Shown: positions 9,808 to 52,856 of the stretch, in pieces
Layout of the letters: the number at the start of each line of letters is the position of its first letter
How positions within the stretch are numbered: position 1 is the stretch's first letter
Origin: Saccharolobus islandicus REY15A
GTDB lineage: Archaea; Thermoproteota; Thermoprotei_A; Sulfolobales; Sulfolobaceae
Direction: 5' to 3' (one strand)
Assembly (NCBI RefSeq): GCF_000189555.1
Contig: NC_017276.1
Length of the DNA: 64,000 bases
Made by a program: the position numbers and the translations under genes
Notes under the pieces: generated by a model
What the model was told of the DNA's origin: nothing
Seen by the model: only the letters and a program-made list of their open reading frames with translations
Database searches by the model: none

Positions 9808-10135
9808 TAGTGTCGTCATTAGGGTATAAATTCTTGTATTACTAGTATTACTTATGGGTAGGAAGTCTGTATTTAGGCAAGACATTTCTTGTCCCTCTTG
9901 TGGTTCTCATCATGTTGTTAAGTGTGGTAAGTCTTGGGGTAGGCAGAAGTATTTGTGTAGGGATTGTGGTAAGCGTTTTTTGGGTGATACTTCTAGGCAT
10001 CATTATCATAAGAGGGTTAGGGAGGAGGCTTTAAAGATGTATGCTAATGGTATGAGTATGAGGGCTATTTCTAGGGTTCTTAACGTACCTCTGGGTACTG
10101 TGTTTACTTGGATTAAGCGTTATGGTAGGCAAAGG
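9808..10135 (+). mobile_element. IS1-family (ISC796-like) 5' fragment with zinc-ribbon/HTH N-terminus
   Basis: ORF 9854..: CPSC...CRDC zinc finger plus HTH; cut at 10135 by an IS6-type MITE. Confidence 0.8.
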
Positions 10136-10346
10136 GAGTGTGGTCAACAATTTCATTTATTTGAAATTTATTAAAAATTGCCTTAAAGCCTCCTCCTTTG
10201 AACACTTTAATTTTATAATAAAAATTTTAATTGAAATTGAAATTGTTACTACTTACTTTATTAACTGACAAATCTTGTGATGAATTGAAATTAAATTCAC
10301 ACTTTATATAATTTATACTGAATTAACAAAATTGTTGTCCACACTC
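10136..10346. mobile_element. ~211 bp non-autonomous MITE with IS6-type TIRs, copy 1
   Basis: GAGTGTGGTCAACAATTT ... AAATTGTTGTCCACACTC; AT-rich non-coding interior; near-identical to 31460..31668. Confidence 0.85.
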
Positions 10347-10776
10347 GAAAATATAAAAGTTAACAACTTAGAAAATATTCAAGTCGTTAATATATCGTGA
10401 GGAAAAAATGGATTTGTGAATACTGATAAATCTAGGAGAAGGACTAACTCCGTCGATAAATATGAATAAGGGTTTTAGAATATCCCTCATATTCACTGAA
10501 AATCTCAATACAGAAATTTAATATAAACAAGGGATGCACATCTAAGATAGATTGTGAAGAATGTGAGTATGAATTTCTAATGGACTAAGATCGCTCTGCG
10601 TTAATGAAATTAACCAGATTGTAACGGAATACATTATGGTTACGAACAGTTAAAGAAAAATTGGAGAGAGCTAGATTTAGAGTGAAAGTTATCAGATTGG
10701 TGTTCTGTATTAATTATCTTGGAAAAATGTTAGCCATGGGTAGATTATATGCTCTAAATAAAGAATAATATATTAA

Positions 10777-31668: not shown

Positions 31669-32084
31669 CTGAGCATGGTGTTAAACTTTTTGATAATCTA
31701 GTGCTTTTAATTATCTTCTTGCTCCTAAGGAAATTTAGTGTTAGTTAAGATCGAATAATCTGGTCGAGTCTCTTAATACATTACTTGAGCGTAGACGTTT
31801 TGGTAAGTTCCACTTGCCTTGGAGCATTCTACAAATAGTCAAGACGATTACCTCAGAGACAATTCATTAACCTCTTTTCTCATCTTAGTAATAATATTAT
31901 ACTAATCCTCATTACTCTCAATAACACAATATATAATTAATTATTTCTTCATAGAATTATTCTTATTGAGCGAAATAAAGCGAATTCACAAAGGAAAGCT
32001 GAATCGCCCTTGACTGAGATAAAGTTAATTTAAAATAGATATAGATACCTAAATTACAAGATTGCTTATTATCACTACTATCTT

Positions 32085-33548
32085 TTATTTAGAAGTTAAT
32101 TTAAAATTTCTTAACCTATAGTAGGCTCTTACCAATTTATTAAGCAACTTACTTTTATAAGTATATTGTATTAACTCTTTATGCGATTTATAATACTTTA
32201 CTTGATTTTTAACTTTAGAAGTGCAAATTATAACTCCCCTAGCGGATGATATAAATGAACAGTCAAATTTTCTGTTTAAGAACTCATATATTTCCATCAA
32301 ACTTTGGATATTTTCATAGTTACCAGTTACTATTATTAATGATCTTGAAGAAAGTTTACTTATCAATTGCTTGAATATTTTTTTATTAACATAATAAAAT
32401 GAGTTAAATATTAGACAATCTATAGACATCTCAGAATTTAACAGATCATCGTATTTGTTTATCTTAATTGTTAAATGTTCGTCTGATATATTAGGGTTTA
32501 CATTCAATAAAATCTCTAGGTTACCAAAGTTATTGTCTTCTAGTGCTTTTTTTATAATATTTTCTGTGAAATCTCCGGGTCCAGATAGTATTACACATAA
32601 ATGAGGCTTGAATGATCGTATTAGTGAATATATTAATTCTAAGTTTTCGATTTCAGGAGTTATTGCATTAATACAACTCCACGATTGACTATCTAATATC
32701 TTATCTTTAAAAATTATAGGCTTAAAAATATTAGATAGTTCAGGCTGAATAAGAGGGCTTATACTTAATATACTTTTTCTTTGTGGTTTAATTTTTTTAT
32801 TGTAATATTCTATTCTCCTTAACAATCCTTGATATCCTAAACCCTTTTTTGAGTCATAGTTTTTTTTGTAATATTCTATTCTCCTTAACATCTCATTATA
32901 TGAATGTCCTAAGTTTCGAACTAGATAATATGGAGCCCAAGCTACAACATACCCTAGTCTTAATATGTCCTCTGATAATCTCGCATCGTCTGGAAAAAGA
33001 AATTCTTCGGTTTTAATAGTATGAACTCTCACTCCTTTTTCCCAAATTTCTCTTCTTATAACGCTAGTAGTACCAACATTGCCTAGTGCTTCATATATTA
33101 TTTCCCCCTCTCTATACCATATCCTCCTTATTGGATGTACTACCCAAACTTCATCATCAGTTGGAACTGGGGAGAATAGTGATAGTTGTCCTAATTTATC
33201 GAACGTTTGGAATAGTTTAACTACCTTCGTAGACCAACCTGGTAAATATTCTATATCGTTCTCGCTTATATGAAGGAGTTTTCCTTTTGCTTCGTTTAAC
33301 CCAAGATTTATAGCTTCCCCTCCAATGTTCTTATCTAGTAATATTATCTTATTAATTTTATTTCCGTGCTTAGCTTTAAGCTCTTCGATAATTTTCCTAG
33401 AATTATCGGTAGAACCATTATCAACTATTATTAACTCATATGGAACCTCTACAGTTTTTAAATAACTTTCCACAGTAATTTTAAGCAAATCGGATCTATT
33501 CCAATTTAGAATGACTGTACTTATCACTATATTGTTATCCTCTGCCAT
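32085..33548 (-). CDS. GT2 glycosyltransferase fused to a degenerate class I methyltransferase-like C-terminal domain
   Basis: ILNWNR, VDNGSTD, ISENDIEY; the C-terminal LIYSLIRSFKP...ALEDNNFG resembles a Methyltransf_24 start but motif I is degenerate. Confidence 0.72.
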   Translation of the reverse strand: MAEDNNIVISTVILNWNRSDLLKITVESYLKTVEVPYELIIVDNGSTDNSRKIIEELKAKHGNKINKIILLDKNIGGEAINLGLNEAKGKLLHISENDIEYLPGWSTKVVKLFQTFDKLGQLSLFSPVPTDDEVWVVHPIRRIWYREGEIIYEALGNVGTTSVIRREIWEKGVRVHTIKTEEFLFPDDARLSEDILRLGYVVAWAPYYLVRNLGHSYNEMLRRIEYYKKNYDSKKGLGYQGLLRRIEYYNKKIKPQRKSILSISPLIQPELSNIFKPIIFKDKILDSQSWSCINAITPEIENLELIYSLIRSFKPHLCVILSGPGDFTENIIKKALEDNNFGNLEILLNVNPNISDEHLTIKINKYDDLLNSEMSIDCLIFNSFYYVNKKIFKQLISKLSSRSLIIVTGNYENIQSLMEIYEFLNRKFDCSFISSARGVIICTSKVKNQVKYYKSHKELIQYTYKSKLLNKLVRAYYRLRNFKLTSK

Positions 33549-34378: not shown

Positions 34379-35365
34379 TCAATGTTTCTTTTTAGCGAGA
34401 ATCATCCCATAATACTTTCCTTGCTCTTCACCAGGTCTATAGTAAACCTCGATTGTGTAATCCTGTTTTAATTTGTCTATTAATAAATGATGAGAAATCC
34501 CTGTCTCTTTTTCATGATAATGAAAGTTTATTATTTCAAATTGTCTTATTGTATCATAATCTTTTAATATAATATCATATTCGCATCCTTCACAGTCCAT
34601 TTTTAATATATATGGATCGTCTGGAAGGATTTCAGACAACGTAAACGTGGGAATATCTTCTTCCATGGTATACTCTTGGTTTATTAACGAGAAGCTCCCA
34701 GATCCATATAGTGGATAGCATCTCGGGATTTTCATGTATTTTTTAGCTTTATTTGATACTAAAGCTCCTCTTATAAAATTCACACTATTTACATTATTTA
34801 TTTTTAAGTGCGTTTTTGCCAGATTATAAGGTAAACTAAGTGGTTCTACACTAATTACATTTCTCGCTCCATGTAGTTTATAGAATATTGCAGTGTCCCC
34901 TATACTTCCTCCGATATCAACTACGTCTCTACCTTTAATTCCTTCAACATAATAAATATTATAGTTAAACGAATGCATTACCCCAATTAGCATTACAAGA
35001 AATTTAACTTTCCCATTAGTCCATAAACCGTCTTCTATTCTCCATCCTAATTCCTTAGCCTCTTCAGAAAGATTTAGAGCTAAAATTAAATTATCATTAA
35101 AATAATCATTACAGCTAAATATTCTGACTTCATTATTTATTATTATCTGGTTTCCTGATACTTCTATTGATGATATCTTATTACTTAAAATAGAGTAGGC
35201 AAGTTGTTCAAACAATCTTCTACTAACCTTTACGGCTTGTCCGTTTATTTTAAGTTCAATAAACTCTTTCTTTTCAATGTATTGTAGCAACGTGGAATAA
35301 GTGTTGTCAAAAAAATTGCTTAACTTCCTTATATTTCTAAGCTCTTTTATGTACTTTAATTTCAT
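34379..35365 (-). CDS. FkbM-family methyltransferase (real start ATG 35365, TAATG-coupled to the upstream stop)
   Basis: VVDIGGSIGDTA, ISVEP, LKMDCEGCE; MKLKYIKELR start resembles 8783..9691. Confidence 0.86.
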   Translation of the reverse strand: MKLKYIKELRNIRKLSNFFDNTYSTLLQYIEKKEFIELKINGQAVKVSRRLFEQLAYSILSNKISSIEVSGNQIIINNEVRIFSCNDYFNDNLILALNLSEEAKELGWRIEDGLWTNGKVKFLVMLIGVMHSFNYNIYYVEGIKGRDVVDIGGSIGDTAIFYKLHGARNVISVEPLSLPYNLAKTHLKINNVNSVNFIRGALVSNKAKKYMKIPRCYPLYGSGSFSLINQEYTMEEDIPTFTLSEILPDDPYILKMDCEGCEYDIILKDYDTIRQFEIINFHYHEKETGISHHLLIDKLKQDYTIEVYYRPGEEQGKYYGMILAKKKH

Positions 35366-36270
35366 TACATATACCCATGTCTCCTCAGTATCTCCATTAT
35401 GTTCTCCTTGTCTTGTGCTCTTCCGGCTCTTTCTGGAGTGTTTTCTAGGTCTTGTTCCCATGCAGGTTTAGTATCTGTAGGTTTGGTCTCATATTTATCG
35501 TCAATACTCCTAAATCCCTTATAATAAAGTGGATGAATAGGCAATTTGTTTGCTAAAATAAAATCCCAAACGTCTCTCTCAGTGAATAGTAGAATGGGGT
35601 GAACTCTGAAATGTTTTGGATCTTCTCGGATTGAGAAGAAAGTTTCTGTTGAACGTGCAGGATTTTCGTCCCATCTATCTCCGACTACTAAAGCATCTAT
35701 ATTATATTCTATAATTGCTTCTTTAAGTGGAACAGTCTTTAGAAGGTGATTTGCTGCAATATTGTTTAACGCATAAGGGAAAGTATCTTTAGAATATCCT
35801 ATCTTTTCTAACTCTTTTTTATCCTTTTCTGAAAGATCAGTTATTTTTATTATATCTCCATAATTGTGTCCTTTTAGCCTTTCGTTACCTTTGACTATTA
35901 AGTTAACGTTCCAATCTTTCTTTACTTTATCAATAAATTCCCATGTTTCATCGAAATGCATGTAATGGTCGATTATTATTGCTTCTAATGGTTTACCTAA
36001 TCTTTCAGAAACTTTCTTAGCGAAATATAATGACAATGTACTGTCTTTTCCACCGCTCCAAACTACCACAACATTTTTAAAAGTATTGTATGCCGCTTCA
36101 ATAACTAATTCAGCAATCTTTGCCTTATATTCAAGAGGCAAATATTCTACTCTTCTTTTATTTTTATTCTGTAATAATGATATAATGTAACTTTCTGGAG
36201 TTAATCCTGTTGAAGATGCTATCTCATATAATTGCTCTGCTATTTTTCCTCGTAAAGTTATACTTGACAT
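35365..36270 (-). CDS. CysD-like sulfate adenylyltransferase (PAPS_reduct fold) with an N-terminal RHH-like segment
   Basis: WSGGKDS PP-loop, G.RWDE..AR, RVHPI..FTERDVW, ERAGRAQDK..ME...GYM; the protein contains no Cys. Confidence 0.72.
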   Translation of the reverse strand: MSSITLRGKIAEQLYEIASSTGLTPESYIISLLQNKNKRRVEYLPLEYKAKIAELVIEAAYNTFKNVVVVWSGGKDSTLSLYFAKKVSERLGKPLEAIIIDHYMHFDETWEFIDKVKKDWNVNLIVKGNERLKGHNYGDIIKITDLSEKDKKELEKIGYSKDTFPYALNNIAANHLLKTVPLKEAIIEYNIDALVVGDRWDENPARSTETFFSIREDPKHFRVHPILLFTERDVWDFILANKLPIHPLYYKGFRSIDDKYETKPTDTKPAWEQDLENTPERAGRAQDKENIMEILRRHGYM

Positions 36271-36562
36271 TTATAAATATCTACATAGATTGTTAATTTA
36301 AGCTTTTTCTTTCATAATTCTTAGTTTACAGTTTATGATTACAGAAATATGTTATTTGAGTTCAAGTAAAAGCATAAGATAAGGAGTATTATCAATAATT
36401 TTTATAATATAGTTAAAACTGCTATATCTATATTATTCGATTTTATGCATGCAAACCCTTACAAAAGTAAAGAGCATAATAATAAAATGTAATATAACCG
36501 TAACTAATACATACTATTCTGTAGCTTTAGATTTAAAATATTGTATATGTACATTTATTTAG

Positions 36563-37984
36563 ATGAATCCTATAAAGAACGCGTTTAAGAGCCTTAGCGT
36601 CACTACTACTAACGTTATAGTTGCTCTAATCTTCTTTATTATTACAGCTAAAATCACTAACCCGGCATTCTTCGGAAAAGTCGCAATAATCCAACTTATT
36701 GAAGTAGTAACTTCTACCTTCTTTTACATTATCCCCGGCCAAATAATAACTAGGGAAATCTCTTACCTTTACGCTAAGAAAGAGGTTAATAAGAAAGTCA
36801 TAGGAAAATTCCTATCATTCCCTTTCCTCGCCTTACCGTTTTTCTCAGTCCTACTCCTTTTCCCTAATTACGTTAAGTTAGCAATACCTTACCTTTTCCT
36901 TTACCTTCTGAATGGTGACATTGGGACAGTAATGATAGGAATGGACATGTTTACAGAAGGAGCAATAACAGGAAACCTCTTCCTAATAATAAGGTGGGGG
37001 ATCTCAATAATTGCTGTCCTCTCTCACAACATTTACCTCTTCATTGAAATATGGACTTTAGGAGGAATCCTCTCTGTCTCTATGAACTACGCCTTTCTCA
37101 GTAGGAAAGTTGGTTTAATTTTGCCATCTTTTGACTTCGCTTTTCTCTTTAAACACTTCAAGGAAGGCTTACCTCTTTACTTGTCTTCTTCAGCAACTTT
37201 CCTCTCTTCACAAGGTGATAGAGTTACGACTGCCTACTTGTTAGGCTCTTACTACCTGGGTTTATACCAGTTTTCCGCCTTAGTAGCTGGAGTGCCTTCA
37301 ATGGTTTTAGGGGCTTTAGGAGGTGTTCTATTACCTACAGCATCATTTTATAAGGCTTTGGGAAAGGACGAGAGGAGGATGTCGTCAATTTCCTTCCGCG
37401 TGTTGTCCCTAATTACATTTCTCGTCGTCATTATCTCTATACCGATTGCTGTCTTAGTCGTGGAAAAGTTTTTCCCAGATTATACTAAAGGTCTTGAAGC
37501 CCTGATCCTCCTCCTTTTAGCTAATACTTTGCCTTTTCCCATAGGCGCTTTAACCAATTTCATAATAGCAGCTAAGAAGTCGTTAAGGCCATTCCTCTTC
37601 CTTTCCTTGCTTAACGGTAGTCTAGTCTTAATCACCTCTTTCCTCTTAATTCCTAGATTAGGAATTATTGGAGGCGCGATTTCTCAGGTAATAGTCTCTG
37701 CAATTTCCTCTTCTTTCGTCTTATCCTACGCTTTGAGGGAGGGCGTCTTTGTCCCAGCTAAGAGGGAGAAGGTGCTGTTGATATTCATGCCTTTAATAGG
37801 ATTATATGAGGTTTTCGTAGACCCTCCCTATCTAGACTTCTTGTTACTGTTGTTCATCTTTATCCTCTTTAATAAAGTGATTACTTTAGATGACGTGAAA
37901 TTGATTGAATCGTTTTTGCCTTCTAAATTGAAGTTCATAACGTCGTTATTAAAGGTGTTTAGTGGAGGGAGAGAAAGTCAATAA
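36563..37984 (+). CDS. Wzx/MurJ-like polysaccharide flippase
   Basis: About 12-14 TM helices; QGDR...YLLGSYYLGLYQ signature. Confidence 0.85.
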   Translation: MNPIKNAFKSLSVTTTNVIVALIFFIITAKITNPAFFGKVAIIQLIEVVTSTFFYIIPGQIITREISYLYAKKEVNKKVIGKFLSFPFLALPFFSVLLLFPNYVKLAIPYLFLYLLNGDIGTVMIGMDMFTEGAITGNLFLIIRWGISIIAVLSHNIYLFIEIWTLGGILSVSMNYAFLSRKVGLILPSFDFAFLFKHFKEGLPLYLSSSATFLSSQGDRVTTAYLLGSYYLGLYQFSALVAGVPSMVLGALGGVLLPTASFYKALGKDERRMSSISFRVLSLITFLVVIISIPIAVLVVEKFFPDYTKGLEALILLLLANTLPFPIGALTNFIIAAKKSLRPFLFLSLLNGSLVLITSFLLIPRLGIIGGAISQVIVSAISSSFVLSYALREGVFVPAKREKVLLIFMPLIGLYEVFVDPPYLDFLLLLFIFILFNKVITLDDVKLIESFLPSKLKFITSLLKVFSGGRESQ

Positions 37985-38099: not shown

Positions 38100-38819
38100 A
38101 TGATTTTCACTTACGGCAAAACTAAGCTGAAAATTCCAGAGGGTTACGAATACGTCTATTACGCTACTTTCATAGCAGGTGAATGGGACTTTTTAAAGGT
38201 TAAGGACACTGACACAGTACTTAATGCGGGCGCATTTATAGGGGACTTCACTGTAAAGATTGCTAGGAAAGCTAAGGAAGTAGTAGCTGTGGAACCTTTA
38301 CCTTGGGCTTTTAAACTGTTAAAGGAGAATGTGGAGATAAACAACTTAAAGAACGTAGTGTTAGTGAACAAGGCTTTATACGACGTTGACGGCGTTAGAC
38401 TAAAAATTGTCGATGAGGGGACTGGCTCTAAGATCGGGGAAAACGGGGTTGAGGTTGAGGGCGTTACTGTGGACTCTTTAGGTAAGTTCTCGGTTGTGAA
38501 GATGGACATTGAAGGCGCTGAGGGAAAGGTAATGAAAAACGGGGAGTGGTTAGACCACGTTAAGCAAATAGCTATTGAACTCCACGGTAGGGAGAACATA
38601 GAGGCTATACCGCAGTTGTTAAGGAACAAAGGTTTTGTGATCAGATTCATGACTGGGGATGACCTAGTCAAAAACGCGCTCAAGAACTCCTTCCTCCACC
38701 CCATCTCGTTTATAAAAGCTGAGGCGAGGACTAAAGTGGTCTTGAACTACTTCAAGAGGAAGTACGACGTGCCGGCTTTGAGTAGGGAGGAGTATAAGAT
38801 ACTTTACGGTAGGAAATGA
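38100..38819 (+). CDS. FkbM-family methyltransferase
   Basis: VLNAGAFIGDFT, VAVEP, VKMDIEGAE, IELH. Confidence 0.86.
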   Translation: MIFTYGKTKLKIPEGYEYVYYATFIAGEWDFLKVKDTDTVLNAGAFIGDFTVKIARKAKEVVAVEPLPWAFKLLKENVEINNLKNVVLVNKALYDVDGVRLKIVDEGTGSKIGENGVEVEGVTVDSLGKFSVVKMDIEGAEGKVMKNGEWLDHVKQIAIELHGRENIEAIPQLLRNKGFVIRFMTGDDLVKNALKNSFLHPISFIKAEARTKVVLNYFKRKYDVPALSREEYKILYGRK

Positions 38820-41575: not shown

Positions 41576-42940
41576 TTAAGCAGATGACAAGAAATTAACT
41601 ATTTTATCGAAGTAATTACGTAGTTCTCTTTTTACAAAGTCCTCTATTTTATTTTTTGTGACAATCTTACCAGGTGTTATATTGCCATCCTTGTCTACAT
41701 TAGGTTTCATATCTGTTGACAATCCTCCGTGCATCAGTGTATTCCTAAATTCCATGAGACCTGAATACCTTAGCCTTAGATAAGAAGTTACAATTTCATT
41801 ACAGTGTTTGTATTTTTCATTCTTATCATCAAACATCCCACCTCCTACTTTATTTAGGCATATTGCAACCGGTAATTCTCTAGCTAAAGATAAAGCTTTA
41901 TCGTAAATCGACGCTTTAATATAAAGGTCAAGCAAATAATTTAGTTTCTCTAAATCGTTACCCTCAATTAATAAGTCCTTAACCTTCAAAGTTGAGTCCA
42001 AATCTGAGAGAACGAGCAAAGTCTCTCCTTGAAAGTTCTTATGCTCCTCCCAGTTCTTATAAAAAGACTTCAATTTTTCTAAATCTTCTTCTAATTGGTT
42101 AATTATATTCTTTAGTTCGTTCATGGATTTTACTGCGTTAACAGTAAAACCGTTCCTTATATTCCACAGAAAATTTATTACCACGTTAACGTCAGTGCCT
42201 TTAACCCTAGTCAGTACTTTTTTCTCTTCCTCTTCAAAGATGGTTGGGTTAAGTCTACTTAACTTAGCTGAATAATCCTTGAAATACCTCTCGTCCAAAT
42301 TTTCTATGGAGGATCTTATCATTAATGAGTCATTTGTTGCTTGTACGACGTCTGTAAGTTCTACAATATTAACTATTGAGTCCTTCCCCGGCATACCCAT
42401 TACCGGTGCAGAGTAAAACTTTGCGTTAAATAATGCTCCGACGTTCATCCCAATAGATACTAGGACGTTTGTACCATGAGTTAAGTCTACTAAATATTCG
42501 TCGCAAGCCTCGTCCTTAAATATAGCATATATCGCGTTAAAGATGAAAATCGGGCTTCTCTTCTCGTTATAAGGCAACCTTTTAAGGACTTCTCTCCCTT
42601 CTTTATTCTTCTCCTTTTTAGGGGCACCGTTCTCGCACTGAATCGCTGAAGCTATTCCAACGTTAGGTATCTTCCTAATTTCAACTTTATTCATAAATTC
42701 TTCCATTCCTGCAAAGTTAAGCTCTTTAGCCCTATTAATTACTAGGTTCTTATAACACTCCTCATCGCTTACATTGTCTTTTACTAAGCTATCGGGAATT
42801 AATGCAATTACCTTATCTGGTTTAAATAAATTGTATAATGCATGAGCAGCAAAGAATGTATTTTGCGTTTGCCCGTTTAGTTCATAATTTACGATACTAT
42901 AATTACTTACGTCTCCAGCTATGTAAAATAGGCATTTCAT
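41576..42940 (-). CDS. csx1: Csx1 CARF-HEPN ribonuclease (cOA-activated); likely start ATG 42940
   Basis: DLTHG CARF motif and RNTLMH HEPN R-x4-H; matches the SisCsx1 sequence as I recall it. Confidence 0.93.
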   Translation of the reverse strand: MKCLFYIAGDVSNYSIVNYELNGQTQNTFFAAHALYNLFKPDKVIALIPDSLVKDNVSDEECYKNLVINRAKELNFAGMEEFMNKVEIRKIPNVGIASAIQCENGAPKKEKNKEGREVLKRLPYNEKRSPIFIFNAIYAIFKDEACDEYLVDLTHGTNVLVSIGMNVGALFNAKFYSAPVMGMPGKDSIVNIVELTDVVQATNDSLMIRSSIENLDERYFKDYSAKLSRLNPTIFEEEEKKVLTRVKGTDVNVVINFLWNIRNGFTVNAVKSMNELKNIINQLEEDLEKLKSFYKNWEEHKNFQGETLLVLSDLDSTLKVKDLLIEGNDLEKLNYLLDLYIKASIYDKALSLARELPVAICLNKVGGGMFDDKNEKYKHCNEIVTSYLRLRYSGLMEFRNTLMHGGLSTDMKPNVDKDGNITPGKIVTKNKIEDFVKRELRNYFDKIVNFLSSA

Positions 42941-42985
42941 AAAATAAGTGACCAAACAGTTCTATATAAAGTAAGTTAAGCAGAG

Positions 42986-43160
42986 ACATGATTGTTGTAT
43001 GAGATGTGAACAACCCCGCCCTTGCGGACGTGGCATCTCCACCTCACGATGGAGATTTCCTGCTTCTTCCAAGAAACTTACTATACACCCCTTCTGAGAA
43101 GGGAATGTATAGCAGAGGTCCCCTGTCCACAGGCTCTAAGGGCAGTCCCGACCCCGCACG
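42986..43160 (-). ncRNA. Predicted omegaRNA (right-end RNA) overlapping the tnpB 3' end; predicted guide ATCTCATACAACAATCATGT
   Basis: Established TnpB architecture; GCCTGTGGA...GAAGCAGGAA...TTCAC scaffold. Boundaries approximate. Confidence 0.65.
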
Positions 43161-44249
43161 AAGAATATTTAGAGAAGCATTATAGTCACGATCTACAGCC
43201 CAACCGCACTTAGGACATGAGAATATACGGTCAGCCAAAGTCAAATCCTTCTTAACGTAACCGCACCTAGCACACGTCTTAGAAGTATTCCTCGGATCTA
43301 CTTTCACTACCCTCCTACCAGCTCTTTCAGCCTTGTAGGAGAGATAGCTCACAAACTTGGAGAAGTTAGAATGAAGAATATGCTTTCTCAAAACTTTACT
43401 TTCACTATCCTCAACTATATCCTTTACATCAAGATCTTCCACGTATATCTCATCATACTCTTCTACTAACCACGAAGTTACCTTATGAATATAATCACTC
43501 ATCACGTTCTTCACATGCTCGTGAAGCTTAGCTAGTTTTTTCCTAACCTTCTCGTAGTTTCTAGATCCCTTCTTTTTCCTTGACAATGATTGTTGCAAAA
43601 TCTTTATCCTCCTCTCGACCTTATCAAAAACCTTAGGGTTCTCTATTACTACACCGTCAGAGGTGGTTACGAGTTTCTCCACTCCTAGGTCTATTCCAAC
43701 CACTTTCCCAGCCTTTTCAAGAGGCTTCTTTTCAACCTCGACTTGAAAGATAGCATACCATCCAGTTACACTCTTCTTTATTATTACCCCTTTTACCTCG
43801 CCTTCTAATGGTCTGTGAAAAAGCACTTTAATCTCCCCTATCTTTGAGAGGATCAGCTTGTCTCCCTCAACCTTGAAACCAGATTGATTATAGTTGATGA
43901 TCTTCATGATCTTCTTGTACCTCAGTTTCCCCACTTTCTTCCCTTTCTTCCTCAGTTCGTGAAGAGCATTGATGTTGTACCATAATTGGTTGTTAACCAT
44001 TTGAAGGGCTTTAGAGTAAACTAGTTCCTTCCCTTCTATTTTCAAGTCCCTCAACATGTTTTGAGTATCCTTAGGTGTTATCTTTTTCCCTTCTTTCCTC
44101 GCGTTATTCACCACGTCTAACAAGGCATTGTATACTTTAGCCTCAATTTGCATCACTTTGATGAGTTTCTCCTCTACTTCTCTCGTTGGGTAAATCTTGT
44201 ACTTGAATGAGAGTTGGGTCTTGTCATTCTTCTCCTTGGCTCTCCACAT
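43044..44249 (-). CDS. tnpB: TnpB RNA-guided nuclease (401 aa)
   Basis: RuvC GIDLG / VEDL / DRDYNAS intact; CARC...CPKC zinc finger. Confidence 0.93.
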   Translation of the reverse strand: MWRAKEKNDKTQLSFKYKIYPTREVEEKLIKVMQIEAKVYNALLDVVNNARKEGKKITPKDTQNMLRDLKIEGKELVYSKALQMVNNQLWYNINALHELRKKGKKVGKLRYKKIMKIINYNQSGFKVEGDKLILSKIGEIKVLFHRPLEGEVKGVIIKKSVTGWYAIFQVEVEKKPLEKAGKVVGIDLGVEKLVTTSDGVVIENPKVFDKVERRIKILQQSLSRKKKGSRNYEKVRKKLAKLHEHVKNVMSDYIHKVTSWLVEEYDEIYVEDLDVKDIVEDSESKVLRKHILHSNFSKFVSYLSYKAERAGRRVVKVDPRNTSKTCARCGYVKKDLTLADRIFSCPKCGWAVDRDYNASLNILRAGSGLPLEPVDRGPLLYIPFSEGVYSKFLGRSRKSPS

Positions 44250-46840: not shown

Positions 46841-47623
46841 GTGACCAAGAGTTATTTAATCCTAGCCTACGCAATAACTCCAGTCCACGTGGGAATGGGT
46901 AGAGCTCCAGGCGTAGTGGATTTACCGTTCCAAAGAGATTCAATAGGTTATCCAATAGTCTATGGCTCTAGCTTTAAGGGAGTTTTAAAGTCAACATTAA
47001 TGAGTAAAAACAATAAGCTTGCAAAGTGCGTATTTGGAGCAGAACCAGAAGATTCTGAGAAGTACATGGGTAGGTTTATAGTTACTGATCTCATACCAGT
47101 TTTTTACCCTATTGCCAGTCTAGATGGATACGTTTATGTTTCTACTGATTACTTGATAAAGAAAGCTGAAGACATCTTAAGTGTGGTTAGAGGTGGTACA
47201 AATAATAATATATATAATAAGAATGACAAAGGAGAGGAAGTAAATATATTGCTTGGCAGATTAAAATCACCTTATACTCTTACTCTCACCGTGAAAGGTA
47301 TAGGTAGTTTAATAAAAGACAAGGTTTATGTATTCGATAACGACGTAGGGTTACAAGTTATTGAATCTTCACTTATAAGAGTTACGAGGAACGTATTAAA
47401 CGATGAAAATAAAACGTCTCAAAATTTGTGGACTGAGGAGTATTTACCGCAAGGAACAGTATTTATAGGAGGAATTATTGACGCCGAAAGAACTAACGAA
47501 TTGTGTAAAGATGTTGGTGACGTTGATAATATGCTTAGGGAAAACTTAGATAATATCTCTGTATTCCTAGGAGGTAAGGAAACTATAGGTAAAGGACTTG
47601 TAAGAATAAAGGTGATTTCATGA
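46841..47623 (+). CDS. cmr4: Cmr4 (Cas7-group backbone RNase)
   Basis: TPVHVG, VVDLPFQRD, GSSFKG, LWTEEY, FLGGKETIGKG. Confidence 0.93.
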   Translation: MTKSYLILAYAITPVHVGMGRAPGVVDLPFQRDSIGYPIVYGSSFKGVLKSTLMSKNNKLAKCVFGAEPEDSEKYMGRFIVTDLIPVFYPIASLDGYVYVSTDYLIKKAEDILSVVRGGTNNNIYNKNDKGEEVNILLGRLKSPYTLTLTVKGIGSLIKDKVYVFDNDVGLQVIESSLIRVTRNVLNDENKTSQNLWTEEYLPQGTVFIGGIIDAERTNELCKDVGDVDNMLRENLDNISVFLGGKETIGKGLVRIKVIS

Positions 47624-48090
47624 GCGAATTTGTTAACTTCGCTGCAAGTATAGGTAAAAGGATTATAACTGCAAATTGCCAAATAGAGAAGGACTCAAGC
47701 AAGCCTGGATTAGTTAGGAGAGCTGTTGATTTTCCTTCACTAATGTTAAGCTTAGGTTTTTCTCCAGCTTTCACGTTCTATATCTCTAAAATAGAGAAAT
47801 ATGAGAACGTGTATAAGGTATATCAGACTTTGAAAGGTAACAATGCCGATAATTCGGTTATATGTGAAGAATTACAAAAGAAAGAAAGTGCAGGCTATTC
47901 AGGTTATGTGGGCATATTACTGGTTACGTTAGAAAAAATAGGCAAGAATATTTCGGTCTCTCCGGATGTAAATAAATTATATTCAGCCTTAATCGACTTA
48001 GCTACTAAAGTAGACTTTAAGGACGAGAGAATTATATTACCTTACTTGAACGAGATAAAGAAGGTTATGGAGGCGTTACCATATGAGTGA
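47620..48090 (+). CDS. cmr5: Cmr5 (Cas11 small subunit)
   Basis: Small helical protein with FPSLM.SLG..P.; operon position. Confidence 0.85.
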   Translation: MSEFVNFAASIGKRIITANCQIEKDSSKPGLVRRAVDFPSLMLSLGFSPAFTFYISKIEKYENVYKVYQTLKGNNADNSVICEELQKKESAGYSGYVGILLVTLEKIGKNISVSPDVNKLYSALIDLATKVDFKDERIILPYLNEIKKVMEALPYE

Positions 48091-49486
48091 GAAAATAAAT
48101 TTAGAAAATTTAGATGCTCAAATTGATAGATTGGTAAAACAAAGATTGATAGCAGAAATAGTATTTAAAGGAATTACTCCATGGTGGGGTGGGGATTATA
48201 ACGGATTTACTTCTAACTATGTTGACGAAGAAGAAATAGTCGGTAGATTAAGATGGTTCTTAAGGACTGTATATAATAGATTTTGCGTAAATAATTTAAG
48301 TGATTATGAAGAGGCAGAAAGAAGAGTTTCTGAGTATTTAGGTTCTACCAATAATAAGTCTATATATACATTTAAGGTAAGAAATGTTAAGGTAAGAAAT
48401 GGAAATTATTCTTATCTTCAACGAGTATCGTTTATACTTCAAGGAAAGCCGCGTGATCTACAAGATAGATTCTTGCCAAAGAACGTTGATGTCTTAGTTC
48501 TAGATATTTATAGTAGAAAAGCAAGTAATTACGATAAGATAATAATAGATGGGCTATTAATAACTTTGGCATTCTTAGGAATAGGTAAAGGAGCAAATAG
48601 AGGTTTCGGGAGATTTATACCAATTAATTGCGATAATTTGCAAAATACTGTATGTAATAATATAATTAAAGGTGATATTATAGGAGCATTCAGTAAATTT
48701 TATGATGAATTTAAAAATGAAGAGAAATGTAATAAAGTTAATAAATGGATAGAATCTGCCGTTCCTTTAGCTCCTTTAACTCAAACTTCTGAAGACTCTA
48801 TATCTAAAACTGGATGCAAAAACAGTGAAATAAATACTCTTCTTGACATAATTCAGACTGCATTATTGAAATCTACGCTAAAGGAAAATTCTTATAATAT
48901 GAATGTTAAAGATCCAGGACCATTTATTCATACATGGATATATGGTTTGCCTAGACACTCAAAAGTTCCACGTAAAATTAATCAATGTTCGATGGATGTC
49001 GAGAAAGACAACCTTAGTGTCAAAGATGAAGAGGTTAAGAAATTACAAAAGATGGGCTATTTTGAATTAAATGGCGATAAATTGGTAGAACCTAGGAGGC
49101 AATCTATGCTCATTATCTCTCCAGTTTTTGATGGAAATACTTACAGTATTTATGTCCTTCCTTTCTTATCTCTTAAGGATAACGAAGAGGAACTAAACAA
49201 GCTCGTTCATAAGGGAATTCATATTACTAGCAATATTATACACTTGGCAAGTGTTAAAAGTATTCTTAAAGGTAATAACTTAATAGGAACTGAGACGCAA
49301 CTTATAAATAAAAGGAGTGATTTGTCAAAAGGAAATTTACAGACCTTAATTGTAAATTATATTAGAGAACTTATATTAAATATCAGTAAACAGTGCAAAG
49401 GAAATACAACTTCTCTAAAGATAGATAAATCTAGAGTAACATCTAGAAGTCAAGGAAAAAGCGGAGGTGGATATTTACGCAAGTGA
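48083..49486 (+). CDS. cmr1: Cmr1 (RAMP)
   Basis: ITPWWGG, GRLRWFLR, GIGKGANRGFG, FGLP-like YGLPR. Confidence 0.88.
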   Translation: MSEKINLENLDAQIDRLVKQRLIAEIVFKGITPWWGGDYNGFTSNYVDEEEIVGRLRWFLRTVYNRFCVNNLSDYEEAERRVSEYLGSTNNKSIYTFKVRNVKVRNGNYSYLQRVSFILQGKPRDLQDRFLPKNVDVLVLDIYSRKASNYDKIIIDGLLITLAFLGIGKGANRGFGRFIPINCDNLQNTVCNNIIKGDIIGAFSKFYDEFKNEEKCNKVNKWIESAVPLAPLTQTSEDSISKTGCKNSEINTLLDIIQTALLKSTLKENSYNMNVKDPGPFIHTWIYGLPRHSKVPRKINQCSMDVEKDNLSVKDEEVKKLQKMGYFELNGDKLVEPRRQSMLIISPVFDGNTYSIYVLPFLSLKDNEEELNKLVHKGIHITSNIIHLASVKSILKGNNLIGTETQLINKRSDLSKGNLQTLIVNYIRELILNISKQCKGNTTSLKIDKSRVTSRSQGKSGGGYLRK

Positions 49487-50223
49487 TGCAAGGTAATCGG
49501 ATTCTTAATGCTATAAAAACTTACATTGAGCATCTAAGAGATGGAGATGTATCCGATATAAAATTGCAAGCTAAGGAAAAAGCGATGAGACAATTATTCT
49601 CGTATAGATTAAACATTAACCTAGTTAATGCTTATATTAACGATGTACGAAATGCTCTAGAGAAGTCCAATATATGCTTTATAGAAATAAAATTCAAGAC
49701 ACTACGTAAGTTTATTTCCGGATGGGGGCCAATATACTTTATAACCGAAGTGCCTATGGCTTGGGACTTAATATTAGACGTGCCTTATATCTCAAGCTCT
49801 TCTATTAAAGGAATAGTAAGAGACTACTTTAAGGAATTAACAAATGACGATAAGAAGACCTCGTGCATATTTGGGGGCACCAATGGAGTAGGAAAAGTAA
49901 TATTTTTTAATGCGTATCCAATATCTTCTGGCAAGATATTAGACTACGATATTATATCTCCACATTATAATGGTGCAGATAACGAATACGATGTAAATCC
50001 AGTTCCGATAAAGTTCTTAACAATAAGCGAAGGAGTAGATTTTGTAACATTCATAGCATTTGATAAGAAGGAATTGGAAGAATGCGGTAAAGATTCGTTA
50101 TCCCAATTATTACAATCCTTCTTATTTTCAATGAAAATGGGTTGGGGAAGAAGGACTAGTAGGGGTTATGGTGATTTAGAAATTATATCTAAGCAGGTGG
50201 AATTAAAATGTCCGAGTTCTTAA
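49483..50223 (+). CDS. cmr6: Cmr6 (RAMP)
   Basis: PYISSSSIKG, DIISPHY, PVPIKFL, GWGRRTSRGYG. Confidence 0.9.
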   Translation: MMQGNRILNAIKTYIEHLRDGDVSDIKLQAKEKAMRQLFSYRLNINLVNAYINDVRNALEKSNICFIEIKFKTLRKFISGWGPIYFITEVPMAWDLILDVPYISSSSIKGIVRDYFKELTNDDKKTSCIFGGTNGVGKVIFFNAYPISSGKILDYDIISPHYNGADNEYDVNPVPIKFLTISEGVDFVTFIAFDKKELEECGKDSLSQLLQSFLFSMKMGWGRRTSRGYGDLEIISKQVELKCPSS

Positions 50224-52856
50224 ATAAGAAAATAATAGCCTATTTCCACGACCCTCCTTGGAAGGCATGGGTAATTACAAGGAATATTAGGGAAGGTCAC
50301 GAAAAGCAGGCAATAGAATTATTAAAAAAGCTAGGAATAGAGATAAACGAAATACCTCCAGAAATTAAAGCTGCAGACAAATTATCTTCAACAATAGATA
50401 GGTGGATTATCAACATATTATACTCTGATAACGCCAAGGGATATCAAGCCGGAGTAAATAAAGTAATGTTCAAGCTAAATATATTCTCTCCATCAAAAAG
50501 ATTTAAATTGTATAGAACCCAAATATCTGAGCAAGAAGTAGAGAATTATGAGAATAAACTTGTAAATATTATAAATAATGAAAAGGAAGAATTAAAATAC
50601 CACTTAATTTATTTCTTATCCCCACTGCTTTGGTATGATTACTTCCCAAATACTCCACCATTAGCAGATACTAGAGTTCCTACTCACACAATATTCGACC
50701 ATGCAACTGCTACTGCTGCAATGTTAAATATAATAGATTGTGAAGGCGACATGTTAAAGTTTAAGGGTTCTGTAGCAGTTTTAGAATTTCCATCTATACA
50801 AGAATTCATATCCATAAGTAGAAAAAGCAGGGATTTATGGGCTTCCAGTTGGCTACCTTCAGCATTATTGTGGAAATCCATAGAAGAATTCATAGAAAAA
50901 TACGGGCCTGATGTAGCTTTAAGGCCGGAATTGAGTTTAAATCACTTCTTTATTGCTTGGCTTTATAATAAAGTTCAAAATAGTAAATCTGAGGTTAAAA
51001 AATATGCAGAAAAGTATGCAGGATTAAAAGATGATCCTAGGATATCAATGATGAGTGAAAAGGTAATATTACTATTGCCGGAAGATGATACAAATAAGAT
51101 AAAGGATAGGCTCAGAGAGAACTTTTACAAGGCGTGGAAAAGCATTGCAGAAGAGGCAATAGGCGAATGGGAAAAATTAGGTGAATATATTAGGAAAGCT
51201 ATTGAAAATCCTCCAGTAAATCCTGTAATTAACGTAGTGAATGTAAATGATATATTTAAAGAATATGCGCAAAAAGTAGGACTTAAAGAAGTAAAGTGTA
51301 AAGAAGGAACATTTCCGTTAGAATATTCCCTATTCTTTGAATATTTGTACAGAAGAGCTATAGAATACAATAAAGTGAAATATTCTTACGGAAGTCTAAT
51401 AAGCGACGTTATTACTAAAGTAACAGCACGACCATATAAGGTGTGCACAGTTTGCGGTATTTTGCCTTCAATACTATATTATCACAGTAACGATAAAATA
51501 GATGATAAAGAAAACGACGCAGAGGATAATTTATGCCCATACTGTGCAATCAAACGCGAATTGAAAGGAGTTAAACTACTTAATGTCCTAGAAAAACTGG
51601 GCATAAAAGTTTCAGGAATAAAATACAGATTTCCTTCAACGTCTGAATTAGCAATGGCCGACTTTGCAGAACATTATGTAAAAACGTTGAAAAGCTTGCC
51701 TGAGGTTGAAGAAGAAGTATTAGGCGGTAATATTGATGCTGTGTTCAAAAACCCTACAGCCGCAGAAAACTATTGCAAGTGTTATGCCGGCGTAAAGTCG
51801 GCCTGTAATATCAGTGACGAAAAATTACTGAAGAACTACGGTAACTTATATTATGCAATTATTAAGGCAGACGGAGACTATATGGGCAAGGGATTTTGGA
51901 GTGGTATATTACCAGGCAAGAAAGATCATATAACAATCAAGGAATACATGGAAGAGATAACGAATTACCTAAAAGAAATAGGGGCAAATAACGATTTAGT
52001 TCAAAGTATAGTTAATAGTTCGTCTAAAGTAGAGGAAACTCTCATTGATATAAGGAAAAAGTTATATCCTAATCAGAAAATATATGATCAAATTCCACTT
52101 ACTTTAGCGTACGCATATACGTTATCGAGATCTTTAACCGTTCAGGCTGTAATTGATAATAAAATATTACGCGATAATAATGCTGTAGCTATATATTTGG
52201 GTGGTGACGACATATTGGCGTTATCGCCTATAAAGTTTAACGAAAAGTACGTAGTTTTAGATTCTGTAACTCAAACTAGAGAATCTTATTGGAGATTCGC
52301 CGATAACTCTAATAATAAATTTGACGGATTTAAGTCATATGCAGGAATGGTGGTAGAGTCTTTAAGAGCTTACGGTAGGAGTTACTCCGTATTTATAGCA
52401 CATTATAAAGATCCACTCTCAATATACATATCAATATCAAATTACTTACTTGAGCTAAAAGACGGAGTTGAAGGAAAAGACGTTATCTTTATATCTTCTG
52501 GCAGGGGAATTTCTAACTTTGACTACAGTATACTAAAATTCAGTAAGAGCGGGGAATATGACGACAGCCAAATAAAAATGGTAGGAAAAATCCTCGAATT
52601 GATGGAGAATAAAAAGAAGATAAGCAATAGTTTCATTTACGATGCCATCAGTATAAGTGAATACAAAGGAGAAAAAGAGGTCTTCAAACGTTTAGTTTAT
52701 AAAGTAATTGATAGGAACACAAGCGATGAGGAAGTCACAAAAGGCCTTTATAATGAGCTAAATAACATGATAGGAAATTGCGTATGTAATGGTGATGCTT
52801 GTGAGAATAAAGAAACGTTCCTTAGTATAATTTACGCAGTATCTTACTTAAGGTGA
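50208..52856 (+). CDS. cas10: Cas10/Cmr2 with HD and Palm (GGDD) domains
   Basis: YFHDPPWK, CTVCG...CPYC zinc finger, KADGD, YLGGDD. Confidence 0.95.
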   Translation: MSEFLNKKIIAYFHDPPWKAWVITRNIREGHEKQAIELLKKLGIEINEIPPEIKAADKLSSTIDRWIINILYSDNAKGYQAGVNKVMFKLNIFSPSKRFKLYRTQISEQEVENYENKLVNIINNEKEELKYHLIYFLSPLLWYDYFPNTPPLADTRVPTHTIFDHATATAAMLNIIDCEGDMLKFKGSVAVLEFPSIQEFISISRKSRDLWASSWLPSALLWKSIEEFIEKYGPDVALRPELSLNHFFIAWLYNKVQNSKSEVKKYAEKYAGLKDDPRISMMSEKVILLLPEDDTNKIKDRLRENFYKAWKSIAEEAIGEWEKLGEYIRKAIENPPVNPVINVVNVNDIFKEYAQKVGLKEVKCKEGTFPLEYSLFFEYLYRRAIEYNKVKYSYGSLISDVITKVTARPYKVCTVCGILPSILYYHSNDKIDDKENDAEDNLCPYCAIKRELKGVKLLNVLEKLGIKVSGIKYRFPSTSELAMADFAEHYVKTLKSLPEVEEEVLGGNIDAVFKNPTAAENYCKCYAGVKSACNISDEKLLKNYGNLYYAIIKADGDYMGKGFWSGILPGKKDHITIKEYMEEITNYLKEIGANNDLVQSIVNSSSKVEETLIDIRKKLYPNQKIYDQIPLTLAYAYTLSRSLTVQAVIDNKILRDNNAVAIYLGGDDILALSPIKFNEKYVVLDSVTQTRESYWRFADNSNNKFDGFKSYAGMVVESLRAYGRSYSVFIAHYKDPLSIYISISNYLLELKDGVEGKDVIFISSGRGISNFDYSILKFSKSGEYDDSQIKMVGKILELMENKKKISNSFIYDAISISEYKGEKEVFKRLVYKVIDRNTSDEEVTKGLYNELNNMIGNCVCNGDACENKETFLSIIYAVSYLR

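Follow-up and report, generated by a model that had tools for sequence, protein, structure and literature searches.

What does a CysD-like protein do at a locus that lacks CysN? CysD proper depends on CysN to be usefully active. The window analysed here, a stretch of 64,000 nucleotides from Saccharolobus islandicus REY15A (NC_017276.1), encodes such a protein amid genes for glycan assembly. A preliminary description had proposed a CysN-independent ATP sulfurylase that makes APS for the sulfation of surface glycans and possibly regulates its own operon.

A cysteine-free CysD-like protein at the head of an operon

The gene and its product have the following features:

35365..36270, (-): CysD-like PP-loop adenylyltransferase, 301 aa, no cysteine (35365 counts the stop codon)
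36040..36057, (-): PP-loop SGGKDS, aa 72-77; G-K-D-S invariant in family alignment A1
35368..35433, (-): C-terminal tail ERAGRAQDKENIMEILRRHGYM, aa 280-301; nearly invariant in the family, aligns with the C-terminus of E. coli CysD
36166..36270, (-): RHH-like, putatively beta-alpha-alpha module of about 35 aa, from AF2 topology and sub-threshold Pfam matches
36293..36301, (-): TATA-box-like element TTAAATTAA, located 23-31 nt before the ATG within the divergent intergenic region (36271-36562)

The protein matched Pfam PF01507 (PAPS_reduct) with an E value of 4e-34, its AF2 model had a pLDDT of 90.4 and it has no transmembrane segment. The PP-loop SGGKDS, the absence of cysteine and the CysD-type C-terminus, all described before, were confirmed on this open reading frame. 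No conserved cysteine was present in a 54-sequence alignment of the family, while the PP-loop, the lysine of NHLLKT, the Arg loop and ER.GR were invariant. With a canonical PP-loop and neither ECG[L]H nor Fe-S cysteines the protein is of the adenylyltransferase type and not a reductase, as had been proposed.

The neighbouring genes are:

34379..35365, (-): FkbM-family methyltransferase, PF05050 / TIGR01444
33572..34243, (-): PIG-L family de-N-acetylase, PF02585, E 7e-25
32085..33548, (-): GT2 glycosyltransferase with a C-terminal extension, PF00535, E 1e-17
36563..37984, (+): multi-span membrane protein, strongly hydrophobic and weakly Wzx/Polysacc_synt-like, a flippase candidate (PF01943, E 4e-5, below the cut-off)
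38100..38819, (+): second FkbM-family methyltransferase, TIGR01444, E 8e-24

Going by the predicted gene products, a glycosylation island occupies positions 16.7 to 38.8 kb of the window. The CysD-like gene leads a co-directional set in this island, in agreement with its description as an operon head, and its TAA stop shares letters with the start codon ATG of the FkbM methyltransferase gene (TAATG at 35365). This ATG is most likely the real start of the methyltransferase. A longer FkbM open reading frame that reaches 35461 reads the 3' end of the CysD-like gene in another frame. On the upstream side TTAAATTAA might be the archaeal promoter of a leaderless transcript, and the gene of the multi-span membrane protein diverges from the CysD-like gene in S. 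shibatae too.

Neighbour Pfam searches and a six-frame motif scan yielded no CysN/EF-Tu G1, APS-kinase P-loop, Sat or PAPS-sulfotransferase motif in the window, so the statement that it contains neither cysN nor an APS kinase is correct. Nor was there a GTPase among the neighbours in 11 loci of relatives with called genes.

Relation to CysD, CysH and FAD synthases

The protein is a member of a conserved family, found mainly in archaea, inside the PAPS-reductase superfamily, and by sequence comparison its nearest characterised relative is CysD. CysD models were its best NCBIfam matches (112.7 bits vs 80.5 bits for CysH), and the best PDB sequence match was 1zun_A (CysD) with an E value of 7e-14. 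An hhalign comparison of the family profile with E. coli CysD gave an E value of 1.6e-22 and ran end to end including ER.GR...GY[FM]; that with E. coli CysH gave 7.4e-14 and the alignment ended before the tail. On the other hand, Foldseek searches with the model gave similar E values (1e-11 to 1e-13) for APS/PAPS reductases, for FAD synthase and for CysD. Thus the fold comparison does not separate them, and for CysD vs CysH the profile comparison is the more discriminating method. The resemblance to CysD claimed before is borne out by the profiles, which place the family nearer CysD, but the structure comparison is undiscriminating.

The resemblance does not amount to identity with CysD. The protein missed the curated CysD cut-offs of NF003587 (112.7 vs 195 bits), TIGR02039 (91.2 vs 396.6 bits) and NF009214 (85.7 vs 413 bits), which indicates a sister family rather than CysD. 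The NCBIfam CysD match was broken into three separate stretches.

CysD (E. coli b2752; P. syringae, PDB 1ZUN chain A) has the PAPS-reductase-like fold and the canonical PP-loop S-x-G-K-D-S in common with the protein. It shares with the family the LKT lysine motif, the R-x-D-E Arg loop and ER.GR...ME..[KR]..GY[FM] up to the last residue, at about 34% identity in aligned profile columns. Two CysD insertions, after the SFRD segment and before ER.GR, are missing from the family, which unlike CysD has an insertion of about 22 aa of its own and a CysH-like G[YF]RSID segment. The S. islandicus protein further differs from CysD by its extra RHH-like N-terminus and the lack of an adjoining CysN. CysH (PDB 2GOY, 4BWV, 2OQ2) has the same fold and supplied the best Foldseek matches (E about 1e-13), and the C-terminal halves align continuously including HPL..G[YF].SI[GD] and ER.GR. 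Yet CysH carries the catalytic ECG(L)H cysteine with or without Fe-S cysteines and a degenerate PP-loop, in contrast to the cysteine-free protein with its full ATP-type PP-loop.

The PDB matches to FAD synthases were weaker (E 3e-6 to 5e-4) than that to CysD. FAD synthetase as the main reading was rejected for this reason and because Hfx. volcanii has RibL, which covers FAD synthesis in that organism (PMC8305020).

The N-terminal module

In the AF2 model the N-terminus is extended and followed by helices H8-20 and H24-32 (model number = true residue - 1) with a pLDDT of 80-85; being a monomer model it allows neither a strand nor a dimer to be judged. The pattern conserved across the N-terminal modules includes an invariant Gly. 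The module is kept in Sulfolobales, Thermoproteales and Conexivisphaera and is missing from most family members, i.e. Thermoplasmata, haloarchaea and fusions. A Pfam search with the isolated N-terminus of the window protein gave no match above threshold. With 17 homologous N-termini RHH_1 matched three (best E 0.015, sub-threshold), and the matches to DUF6364, CcdA and RelB were also sub-threshold. A PDB profile search with the module returned helical-repeat noise and no RHH protein. The earlier assignment of the N-terminus to the RHH class was thus not substantiated by these searches, and an RHH nature of aa 1-35 is plausible at most.

DPANN archaea encode the RHH-like module as a small protein of its own, which bears the C-terminal peptide of the CysD-like enzyme itself. 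This makes protein-protein docking at least as likely a role of the module as DNA binding, and the analysis yielded nothing in favour of the autoregulation of the operon suggested before. The same peptide, ...LR.LGY[MF], is common to the CysD-like enzyme, this stand-alone protein and catalytically dead paralogues.

If the protein were a regulator, an RHH transcription factor would be fused to a non-catalytic PAPS-reductase-like sensor of ATP, APS or PAPS and control the island. The putative beta-alpha-alpha topology with its weak RHH-type Pfam matches and the position of the gene at a divergent promoter region would fit. However, all catalytic-type residues are invariant, most family members do without the module, the degenerate paralogues occur as separate proteins and the RHH matches never reached significance, so that we consider a regulator very unlikely. 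Inverted repeats in the divergent intergenic region were only imperfect AT-rich pairs and uninformative as candidate operators.

A sulfatase-like predicted partner with threonine at the nucleophile position

About 4 kb from the CysD-like gene, on the opposite strand and outside its operon, the window contains a further gene:

29939..31249, (+): sulfatase-like protein of the alkaline-phosphatase superfamily, 436 aa, soluble, PF00884, E 5.5e-19

This gene and its link to the CysD-like gene had been overlooked in the preliminary description. Its product, here called the partner, has T45-L-P-S-H49 at the place where sulfatases have C/S-x-P-x-R. In a PDB profile search T45 aligned with the formylglycine Cys/Ser and H49 with the Arg of the motif, the aligned counterparts being C-G-P-S-R and S-S-P-A-R of solved sulfatases and a phosphonate monoester hydrolase. 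D14, T45, H49, D295, H296 and H308 are invariant, and T-L-P-S-H is so in 10 orthologues. A protein with this motif instead of C/S-x-P-x-R cannot be a hydrolytic sulfatase of the canonical kind.

Phosphotransferases and phosphodiesterases of the alkaline-phosphatase superfamily are characterised by a Thr nucleophile. LtaS, EptA/MCR-type enzymes and NPP have the Thr nucleophile position and the D/T/D-H/H metal-ligand pattern in common with the partner, and its N-terminal motif resembles ENPP4 and ENPP7. However, S1 sulfatases and phosphonate monoester hydrolases, not LtaS, EptA or NPP, match the partner best overall, and without a transmembrane segment it is soluble and cytoplasmic, whereas those enzymes are membrane-anchored and extracytoplasmic.

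O-sulfate is frequent on the surface glycans and lipids of archaea. A precedent for a sulfatase-like protein as a transferase is provided by Agl30 and Agl31 of Hbt. salinarum, alkaline-phosphatase-superfamily N-glycan sulfotransferases according to deletion and heterologous expression in Hfx. volcanii (PMC11980604, 2025). Which sugar is sulfated depends on Agl30 or Agl31, respectively, i.e. they behave as transferases; the sulfate donor is not named in that study. Ordinary Halobacterium strains reportedly lack canonical sat, cysNC and cysH and yet have sulfated glycans (PMC12023398), and Haloferax Agl7 (HVO_2046) is said to contribute to sulfation (PMC3892788). Like Agl30 and Agl31 the partner is sulfatase-like and encoded in a glycosylation cluster, and like Agl31 it is soluble; the likeness is one of fold class, cluster setting and solubility. 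In addition, no CysD-like gene is reported in the Hbt. salinarum Agl cluster, and organism, glycan and acceptor differ from those of the window. By this analogy we predict the partner to be a sulfuryl transferase that works with the CysD-like enzyme, and the CysD-like family could be the donor-supplying enzyme of the Agl30/Agl31 system.

Adjacency and fusion of the two genes in other archaea

Genomes of at least 579 archaeal species contain a member of the family. The CysD-like gene adjoins a gene for a sulfatase- or phosphodiesterase-like protein of the alkaline-phosphatase superfamily in Thermoproteota, Nitrososphaeria and Thermoplasmata, as well as in 17 haloarchaeal loci. A PF00884 gene lies 0-10 nt downstream in Vulcanisaeta, Conexivisphaera/Nitrososphaeria and Thermoplasmata, and in the 17 haloarchaeal loci the neighbour is a PF01663 gene. 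Altogether an alkaline-phosphatase-superfamily gene was found within 300 nt in 29 of 92 loci, and both domains were fused into a single polypeptide in about 24 of 150 cluster representatives. The partner orthologue itself is elsewhere directly downstream of the CysD-like gene or fused to it. One protein (P0308, from a single contig) is a triple fusion of an alkaline-phosphatase-like domain, an EF-Tu-type GTPase and a CysD-like domain. Among distant relatives retrieved with the family profile were fusions of GTP_EFTU with PAPS_reduct (P0318 with 9 cluster members, and P0368), of APS_kinase with PAPS_reduct (P0364) and of CysH with CysD (P0332). Through adjacency and fusion to Agl30/Agl31-type proteins the proposed link to glycan sulfation is better supported than it was originally.

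The threonine could also indicate transfer of a phospho-group. The CysD-like enzyme would then adenylylate a phosphorylated compound (ATP + R-O-PO3 -> ADP-R + PPi) like a eukaryote-type FMN adenylyltransferase, and the partner would transfer phospho-R, e.g. phosphoglycerol or phosphoethanolamine, to a glycan via a covalent Thr-phosphate as in LtaS and EptA. Consistent with this, FMN adenylyltransferases are members of the superfamily and fit the model roughly as closely as reductases and CysD do, the partner has Thr at the nucleophile position and an N-terminal motif matching ENPP4 and ENPP7, and the PF01663 phosphodiesterase type accounts for half of the partners that are fused or adjacent. 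Yet the sequence profiles are nearer CysD than FAD synthases, the fusions of the distant relatives involve sulfate-pathway domains (EF-Tu-type GTPase, APS kinase, CysH), all archaeal proteins of the partner's kind that have been characterised transfer sulfate (PMC11980604), and FAD synthesis in Hfx. volcanii is already covered by RibL (PMC8305020). We regard a phospho-group pathway as unlikely.

The distribution of the family bears on whether its function is confined to glycans. Thermoproteota and Thermoplasmata have glycosyltransferases as neighbours of the CysD-like gene. In many haloarchaea, by clustering of neighbourhoods with a GC3 filter against long antisense ORFs in GC-rich genomes, it resides not in glycan clusters but in housekeeping synteny with glutaredoxin, DUF7110 and Dph6-like genes. 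Between haloarchaeal genera the protein keeps about 80% identity, which is suggestive of a core function that goes beyond the decoration of glycans. Two family members are encoded in tandem by Hfx. volcanii; no Halobacterium protein was among the best 120 matches to a Halarchaeum query, with Halarchaeum and Salarchaeum present. In S. acidocaldarius the CysD-like gene is intact from residue 2 by tblastn and the partner is a pseudogene; thus the enzyme is useful without that partner.

Wide distribution, high conservation, housekeeping synteny and the decayed partner in S. acidocaldarius, together with the classification of the partner as PF00884 Sulfatase, would also suit a general ATP sulfurylase that makes APS for assimilation or any APS-using pathway, where the "sulfatase" frees sulfate from esters or hydrolyses PPi or nucleotides. 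On the other hand, the partner is cytoplasmic and lacks the C/S-x-P-x-R motif needed for sulfatase activity, neither APS kinase nor APS/PAPS reductase nor sulfite reductase was found near the CysD-like gene in the window or the inspected loci, its neighbours in Thermoproteota and Thermoplasmata are glycosyltransferases, and Agl30 and Agl31 each determine the sulfated sugar in the manner of transferases (PMC11980604). General sulfate activation or scavenging is in our estimate rather unlikely.

A proposed PAPS-independent sulfation of glycans

Taken together, we favor the view, with a probability of about one half, that the CysD-like protein is a CysN-independent sulfate adenylyltransferase that feeds APS to an alkaline-phosphatase-superfamily transferase within the glycosylation island. 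As a stand-alone, minimal CysD-type enzyme it would convert ATP and sulfate to APS and PPi without the CysN GTPase; we infer sulfate and APS as substrate and product. The soluble partner would use APS directly, with no need for APS kinase or PAPS. This protein, whose Thr occupies the formylglycine position, would by analogy with Agl30/Agl31 pass the sulfuryl group on to a cytoplasmic glycan or exopolysaccharide precursor, probably lipid-linked. The presumed acceptor would be built by the glycosyltransferases, FkbM methyltransferases, PIG-L deacetylase and flippase candidate of the island. By consuming APS, the partner, in many relatives part of one polypeptide with the enzyme, might pull the unfavourable activation step.

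Several observations count against this explanation: the low CysD scores, the undiscriminating fold comparison, the distance of 4 kb to the partner, the situation in S. acidocaldarius, the haloarchaeal conservation, the lack of a Halobacterium protein among the best 120 matches and the origin of P0308 from a single contig. Furthermore, a coupling partner in the place of CysN is not evident for the enzyme here, and the known Sulfolobales N-glycans contain sulfoquinovose with its C-S bond and not O-sulfate.

A broader proposal, which we make tentatively and with the odds somewhat against it, is a widespread PAPS-independent sulfation in which CysD-type enzymes supply APS to Thr-nucleophile sulfotransferases of the alkaline-phosphatase superfamily, often as fusions and once with an EF-Tu-type GTPase between them; LR.LGY[MF] would be a docking signal for assembly of the complex. 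In the literature searched we found no description of the CysD-like/sulfatase-like pair or of a CysN-independent archaeal CysD.

The sulfotransferases known from other systems depend on PAPS, and an APS donor, to which the CysD-like/partner pairing points, would depart from them. If the proposal is true, such a pathway would explain the sulfation of glycoproteins, glycolipids and exopolysaccharides in archaea without PAPS synthesis. The CysD-like enzyme, which repeatedly adjoins or is fused to Agl30/Agl31-type proteins, is a concrete and testable candidate for the activation step. The widespread labels "PAPS reductase family protein" and "sulfate adenylyltransferase subunit 2" would be corrected, and a CysN-independent form of CysD would become available for mechanistic study. 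If instead a phospho-group were transferred, the pair would still be a new two-enzyme route for glycan decoration.

A cysteine-free relative of CysD

The gene under study encodes a protein of the PP-loop type:

35365-36270 (-), CysD-like ORF, 301 aa, starting MSSITLRGK and ending RRHGYM
36040-36057 (-), PP-loop SGGKDS, residues 72-77 of the CysD-like protein

Pfam placed a PAPS_reduct domain (PF01507) at residues 66-262 with an E of 4e-34, and the 301 residues contained no cysteine. The ORF, Pfam and profile comparisons confirmed the preliminary description of a cysteine-free protein with SGGKDS and a CysD-type C-terminus. A thiol or Fe-S reductase was ruled out because the protein has no cysteine, none is conserved in its relatives, and the family has a canonical ATP-type PP-loop, while that of CysH is degenerate. 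The sequence points to an adenylyltransferase. The region is syntenic with the Saccharolobus shibatae genome at a nucleotide identity of 70-77%; the orthologue of S. shibatae B12 is 88% identical to the protein.

Three CysD models of NCBIfam scored highest (112.7, 91.2 and 85.7 bits vs 80.5 bits for CysH), all of these CysD matches being far under the curated cut-offs and split over three stretches. By sequence the best solved structure was CysD 1zun_A with an E of 7e-14; PAPS/APS reductases ranked next and FAD synthases after them. A family profile of 54 sequences aligned with E. coli CysD over the whole length including the final GY[FM] (E 1.6e-22), whereas the alignment with E. coli CysH stopped short of the tail (E 7.4e-14). 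The AF2 model was confident with a pLDDT of 90.4. With it Foldseek scored APS/PAPS reductases, FAD synthase and CysD alike, at E 1e-11 to 1e-13. The profiles favored CysD over CysH; the fold comparison was neutral. In alignments with the CysD and CysH profiles the family lacked two insertions of CysD, had an insertion of about 22 residues of its own and contained the CysH-like segment G[YF]RSID. On this evidence we place the protein in a family sister to CysD, a 'minimal CysD' that falls outside CysD as curated. Of the ATP sulfurylase proposed earlier, the adenylyltransferase type and CysD as nearest relative by NCBIfam, PDB and profile stood, while assignment to CysD fell short of the curated cut-offs.

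A first homologue search returned 643 proteins at E <= 0.001, and a pattern scan with one genome per species found relatives in at least 579 archaeal genomes, including Nitrososphaeria, Thermoplasmata, DPANN lineages and very many Halobacteria. In alignment A1, which like the AF2 model is numbered one below the true residue number because the reference lacks the first Met, invariant residues include (true numbering) G74-K75-D76-S77, H102 and H105, N174-H175-x-L177-K178-T179, G197-x-R199-x-D201-E202...R206, H220-x-R222, G252-x-R254-S255, P269-A270-W271 and the tail E280-R281-x-G283-R284-x-Q286-x-K288-E289..M292..L295-R296..G299-Y300. The haloarchaeal form of 322/323 aa is about 80% identical between genera. 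Hfx. volcanii has two tandem paralogues (locus L092, 7897-8874 and 9001-9954) in a conserved haloarchaeal block of monothiol glutaredoxin, DUF7110, paralogue 1, paralogue 2 and a Dph6-like PP-loop protein. Two CysD-type relatives, P0357 and P0367, carry apparent large interrupting insertions that look like inteins.

A predicted alkaline-phosphatase-superfamily partner

The window holds a sulfatase-like gene of the alkaline-phosphatase (AP) superfamily:

29939-31249 (+), AP-superfamily partner orthologue, 4 kb from the CysD-like gene on the opposite strand

The two genes are separated in the same way in S. shibatae, with IS debris between them. No TM segments were found in the partner protein, and the superfamily metal ligands D14, D295-H296 and H308 are conserved. 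Comparison with solved sulfatases and phosphonate monoester hydrolase put T45-L-P-S-H49 at the exact position of the formylglycine motif C/S-x-P-x-R; therefore the partner is not a canonical sulfatase. Thr at the nucleophile position is typical of AP-superfamily transferases and phosphodiesterases, and ENPP4 and ENPP7 also match the N-terminal motif.

In S. acidocaldarius (locus L004) the CysD-like gene at 9842-10741 is intact from residue 2; the gene call misplaces its start by about 55 codons in the downstream direction. It is immediately followed by a sulfatase-like pseudogene (10806-11486) that has three in-frame stops, carries Tyr in place of Asp14 and lacks the C-terminal half. In our window, the 835 bp between the partner and a GT2 gene (31250-32084) lack an ORF of >= 60 aa and include, especially at 31799-32011, a fragment resembling S. 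shibatae mutator-type transposase genes.

An intact CysD-like gene beside a decayed partner, together with the strong conservation of the family, would fit an ATP sulfurylase of general purpose, or a scavenging module, whose partner is a hydrolase. We consider this doubtful, since the partner lacks the formylglycine motif and the genes lie among those of glycosyltransferases.

In other genomes the two genes are often neighbors. A PF00884 'Sulfatase' gene follows the CysD-like gene after 0-10 nt in Vulcanisaeta, Conexivisphaera/Nitrososphaeria and several Thermoplasmata, and a PF01663 phosphodiesterase-type gene adjoins it in 17 haloarchaeal loci. Altogether an AP-superfamily gene lay within 300 nt in 29 of 92 loci, some of which are near-duplicates. 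One Thermoplasmata locus (L032) encodes a fusion of both domains of 759 aa. Among the 150 best relatives from a profile search against 1.84 billion cluster representatives, about 24 have an AP-superfamily domain fused N-terminally to the CysD-like one; in a sample of fusions Pfam found PF00884 in P0242 and P0281 and PF01663 in P0255 and P0273. Several fusions occur on independent contigs. More distant relatives combine GTP_EFTU with the CysD-like domain (P0318, nine cluster members, and P0368), APS_kinase with CysD (P0364) and CysH with CysD (P0332); AP-like, GTP_EFTU and CysD-like domains are joined in P0308, on one contig only. Fusion to a CysN-type GTPase, to APS kinase or to CysH ties this superfamily branch to sulfate activation, and fusion to AP domains ties it to an AP-superfamily enzyme as the next step.

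An enzyme that activates a phosphorylated group rather than sulfate would match the Thr nucleophile and partners of the PF01663 type, but agrees less well with the CysD-like sequence and the sulfate-pathway fusions, and appears unlikely.

The N-terminal module and the terminal peptide

Residues 1-35 show a conserved pattern of hydrophobic strand, helix, G-x-[ST/D]-P turn and helix, and the AF2 model has an extended N-terminus followed by two helices. Pfam gave no match for the N-terminus of the window's protein and only sub-threshold matches (RHH_1, CcdA, RelB, DUF6364) for homologous ones, and a PDB profile search with the module found no RHH protein. The N-terminal module described earlier is probably RHH-like.

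In DPANN the module is a separate protein of 70-73 aa encoded immediately upstream of the CysD-like gene (locus L025, 9743-9964; also L022, L023 and L026-L028). Unexpectedly it ends in ...LEDKLRKLGYM, the extreme C-terminal peptide of the enzyme (...LR.LGYM). A TrpRS-like gene lies near this gene pair, on one or the other side, in two DPANN lineages. In relatives P0250, P0253, P0260, P0261, P0268, P0274, P0277 and P0280 both the PP-loop and the ER.GR loop are gone but the terminal ...L[RK].LGY[x] is retained; these proteins may be catalytically dead paralogues. The retained peptide suggests that the tail serves for docking. For the N-terminal module, complex assembly is at least as likely a role as the autoregulation considered earlier. 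That the protein is an RHH regulator carrying a sensor domain is very improbable given the invariant catalytic residues and the absence of the module from most members.

Operon and genomic surroundings

The stop codon of the CysD-like gene overlaps the ATG of an FkbM methyltransferase gene (TAATG), followed by PIG-L after 135 nt and GT2 after another 23 nt. The CysD-like start codon is preceded, at 23-31 nt, by a TTAAATTAA element, a spacing that would fit a leaderless archaeal transcript. A mechanically called ORF of 360 aa (34379-35461, -) overlaps the CysD-like 3' end by 97 nt, its first 32 codons being an alternative frame of that gene; the likeliest FkbM start is the ATG at 35365. The S. 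shibatae counterpart of FkbM is broken into pieces of 52, 99 and 181 aa.

A GC-poor glycosylation island littered with IS elements occupies 16.7-38.8 kb of the window. Within it, the 767-aa ORF 23169-25472 (+) had no Pfam match at E <= 0.001, and a Ser/Thr/Pro/Phe-rich ORF of 181 aa (38159-38704, -), antisense inside a second FkbM gene, is almost certainly spurious. Other features of the window are:

27016-27702, IS110-family transposase
41576-42955 (-), Csx1 CARF-domain protein
43044-44249, IS605 OrfB/TnpB

Co-directional ORFs after Csx1 (46841-52856, +) may form a type III CRISPR effector module.

Proposed mechanism

Taken together we favor the view that the feature is a CysD-type adenylyltransferase working without CysN and coupled to an AP-superfamily transferase. 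In this scheme sulfate would be adenylylated to APS by the CysD-like enzyme. The partner would then move the sulfuryl group of APS to a cytoplasmic glycan intermediate, plausibly with sulfo-Thr as a stage on the way or in one direct in-line step at the metal centre. A partner fused to the enzyme or closely bound to it would, by using up APS, supply the thermodynamic pull that comes elsewhere from GTP hydrolysis by CysN or from APS kinase. We put the probability of this mechanism at about 0.5 and infer its substrate, product and acceptor from the observed sequence-level and context facts. The initial idea of APS made for surface-glycan sulfation is partly supported, and the partner gene sharpens it.

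Zaretsky et al. (PMC11980604) identified the sulfatase-like proteins Agl30 and Agl31 as N-glycan sulfotransferases of Hbt. salinarum by deletion and by expression in Hfx. volcanii; the words donor, PAPS and APS are absent from the paper. A comparative genomics study (PMC12023398) reports canonical PAPSS, sat, cysNC and cysH from strain AD88 and a lack of full-length homologues in other Halobacterium species. The literature searched contained no published link between a CysD-like protein and AP-superfamily sulfotransferases. The CysD-like gene is of interest mainly because it allows a direct test of what the archaeal sulfate donor is.
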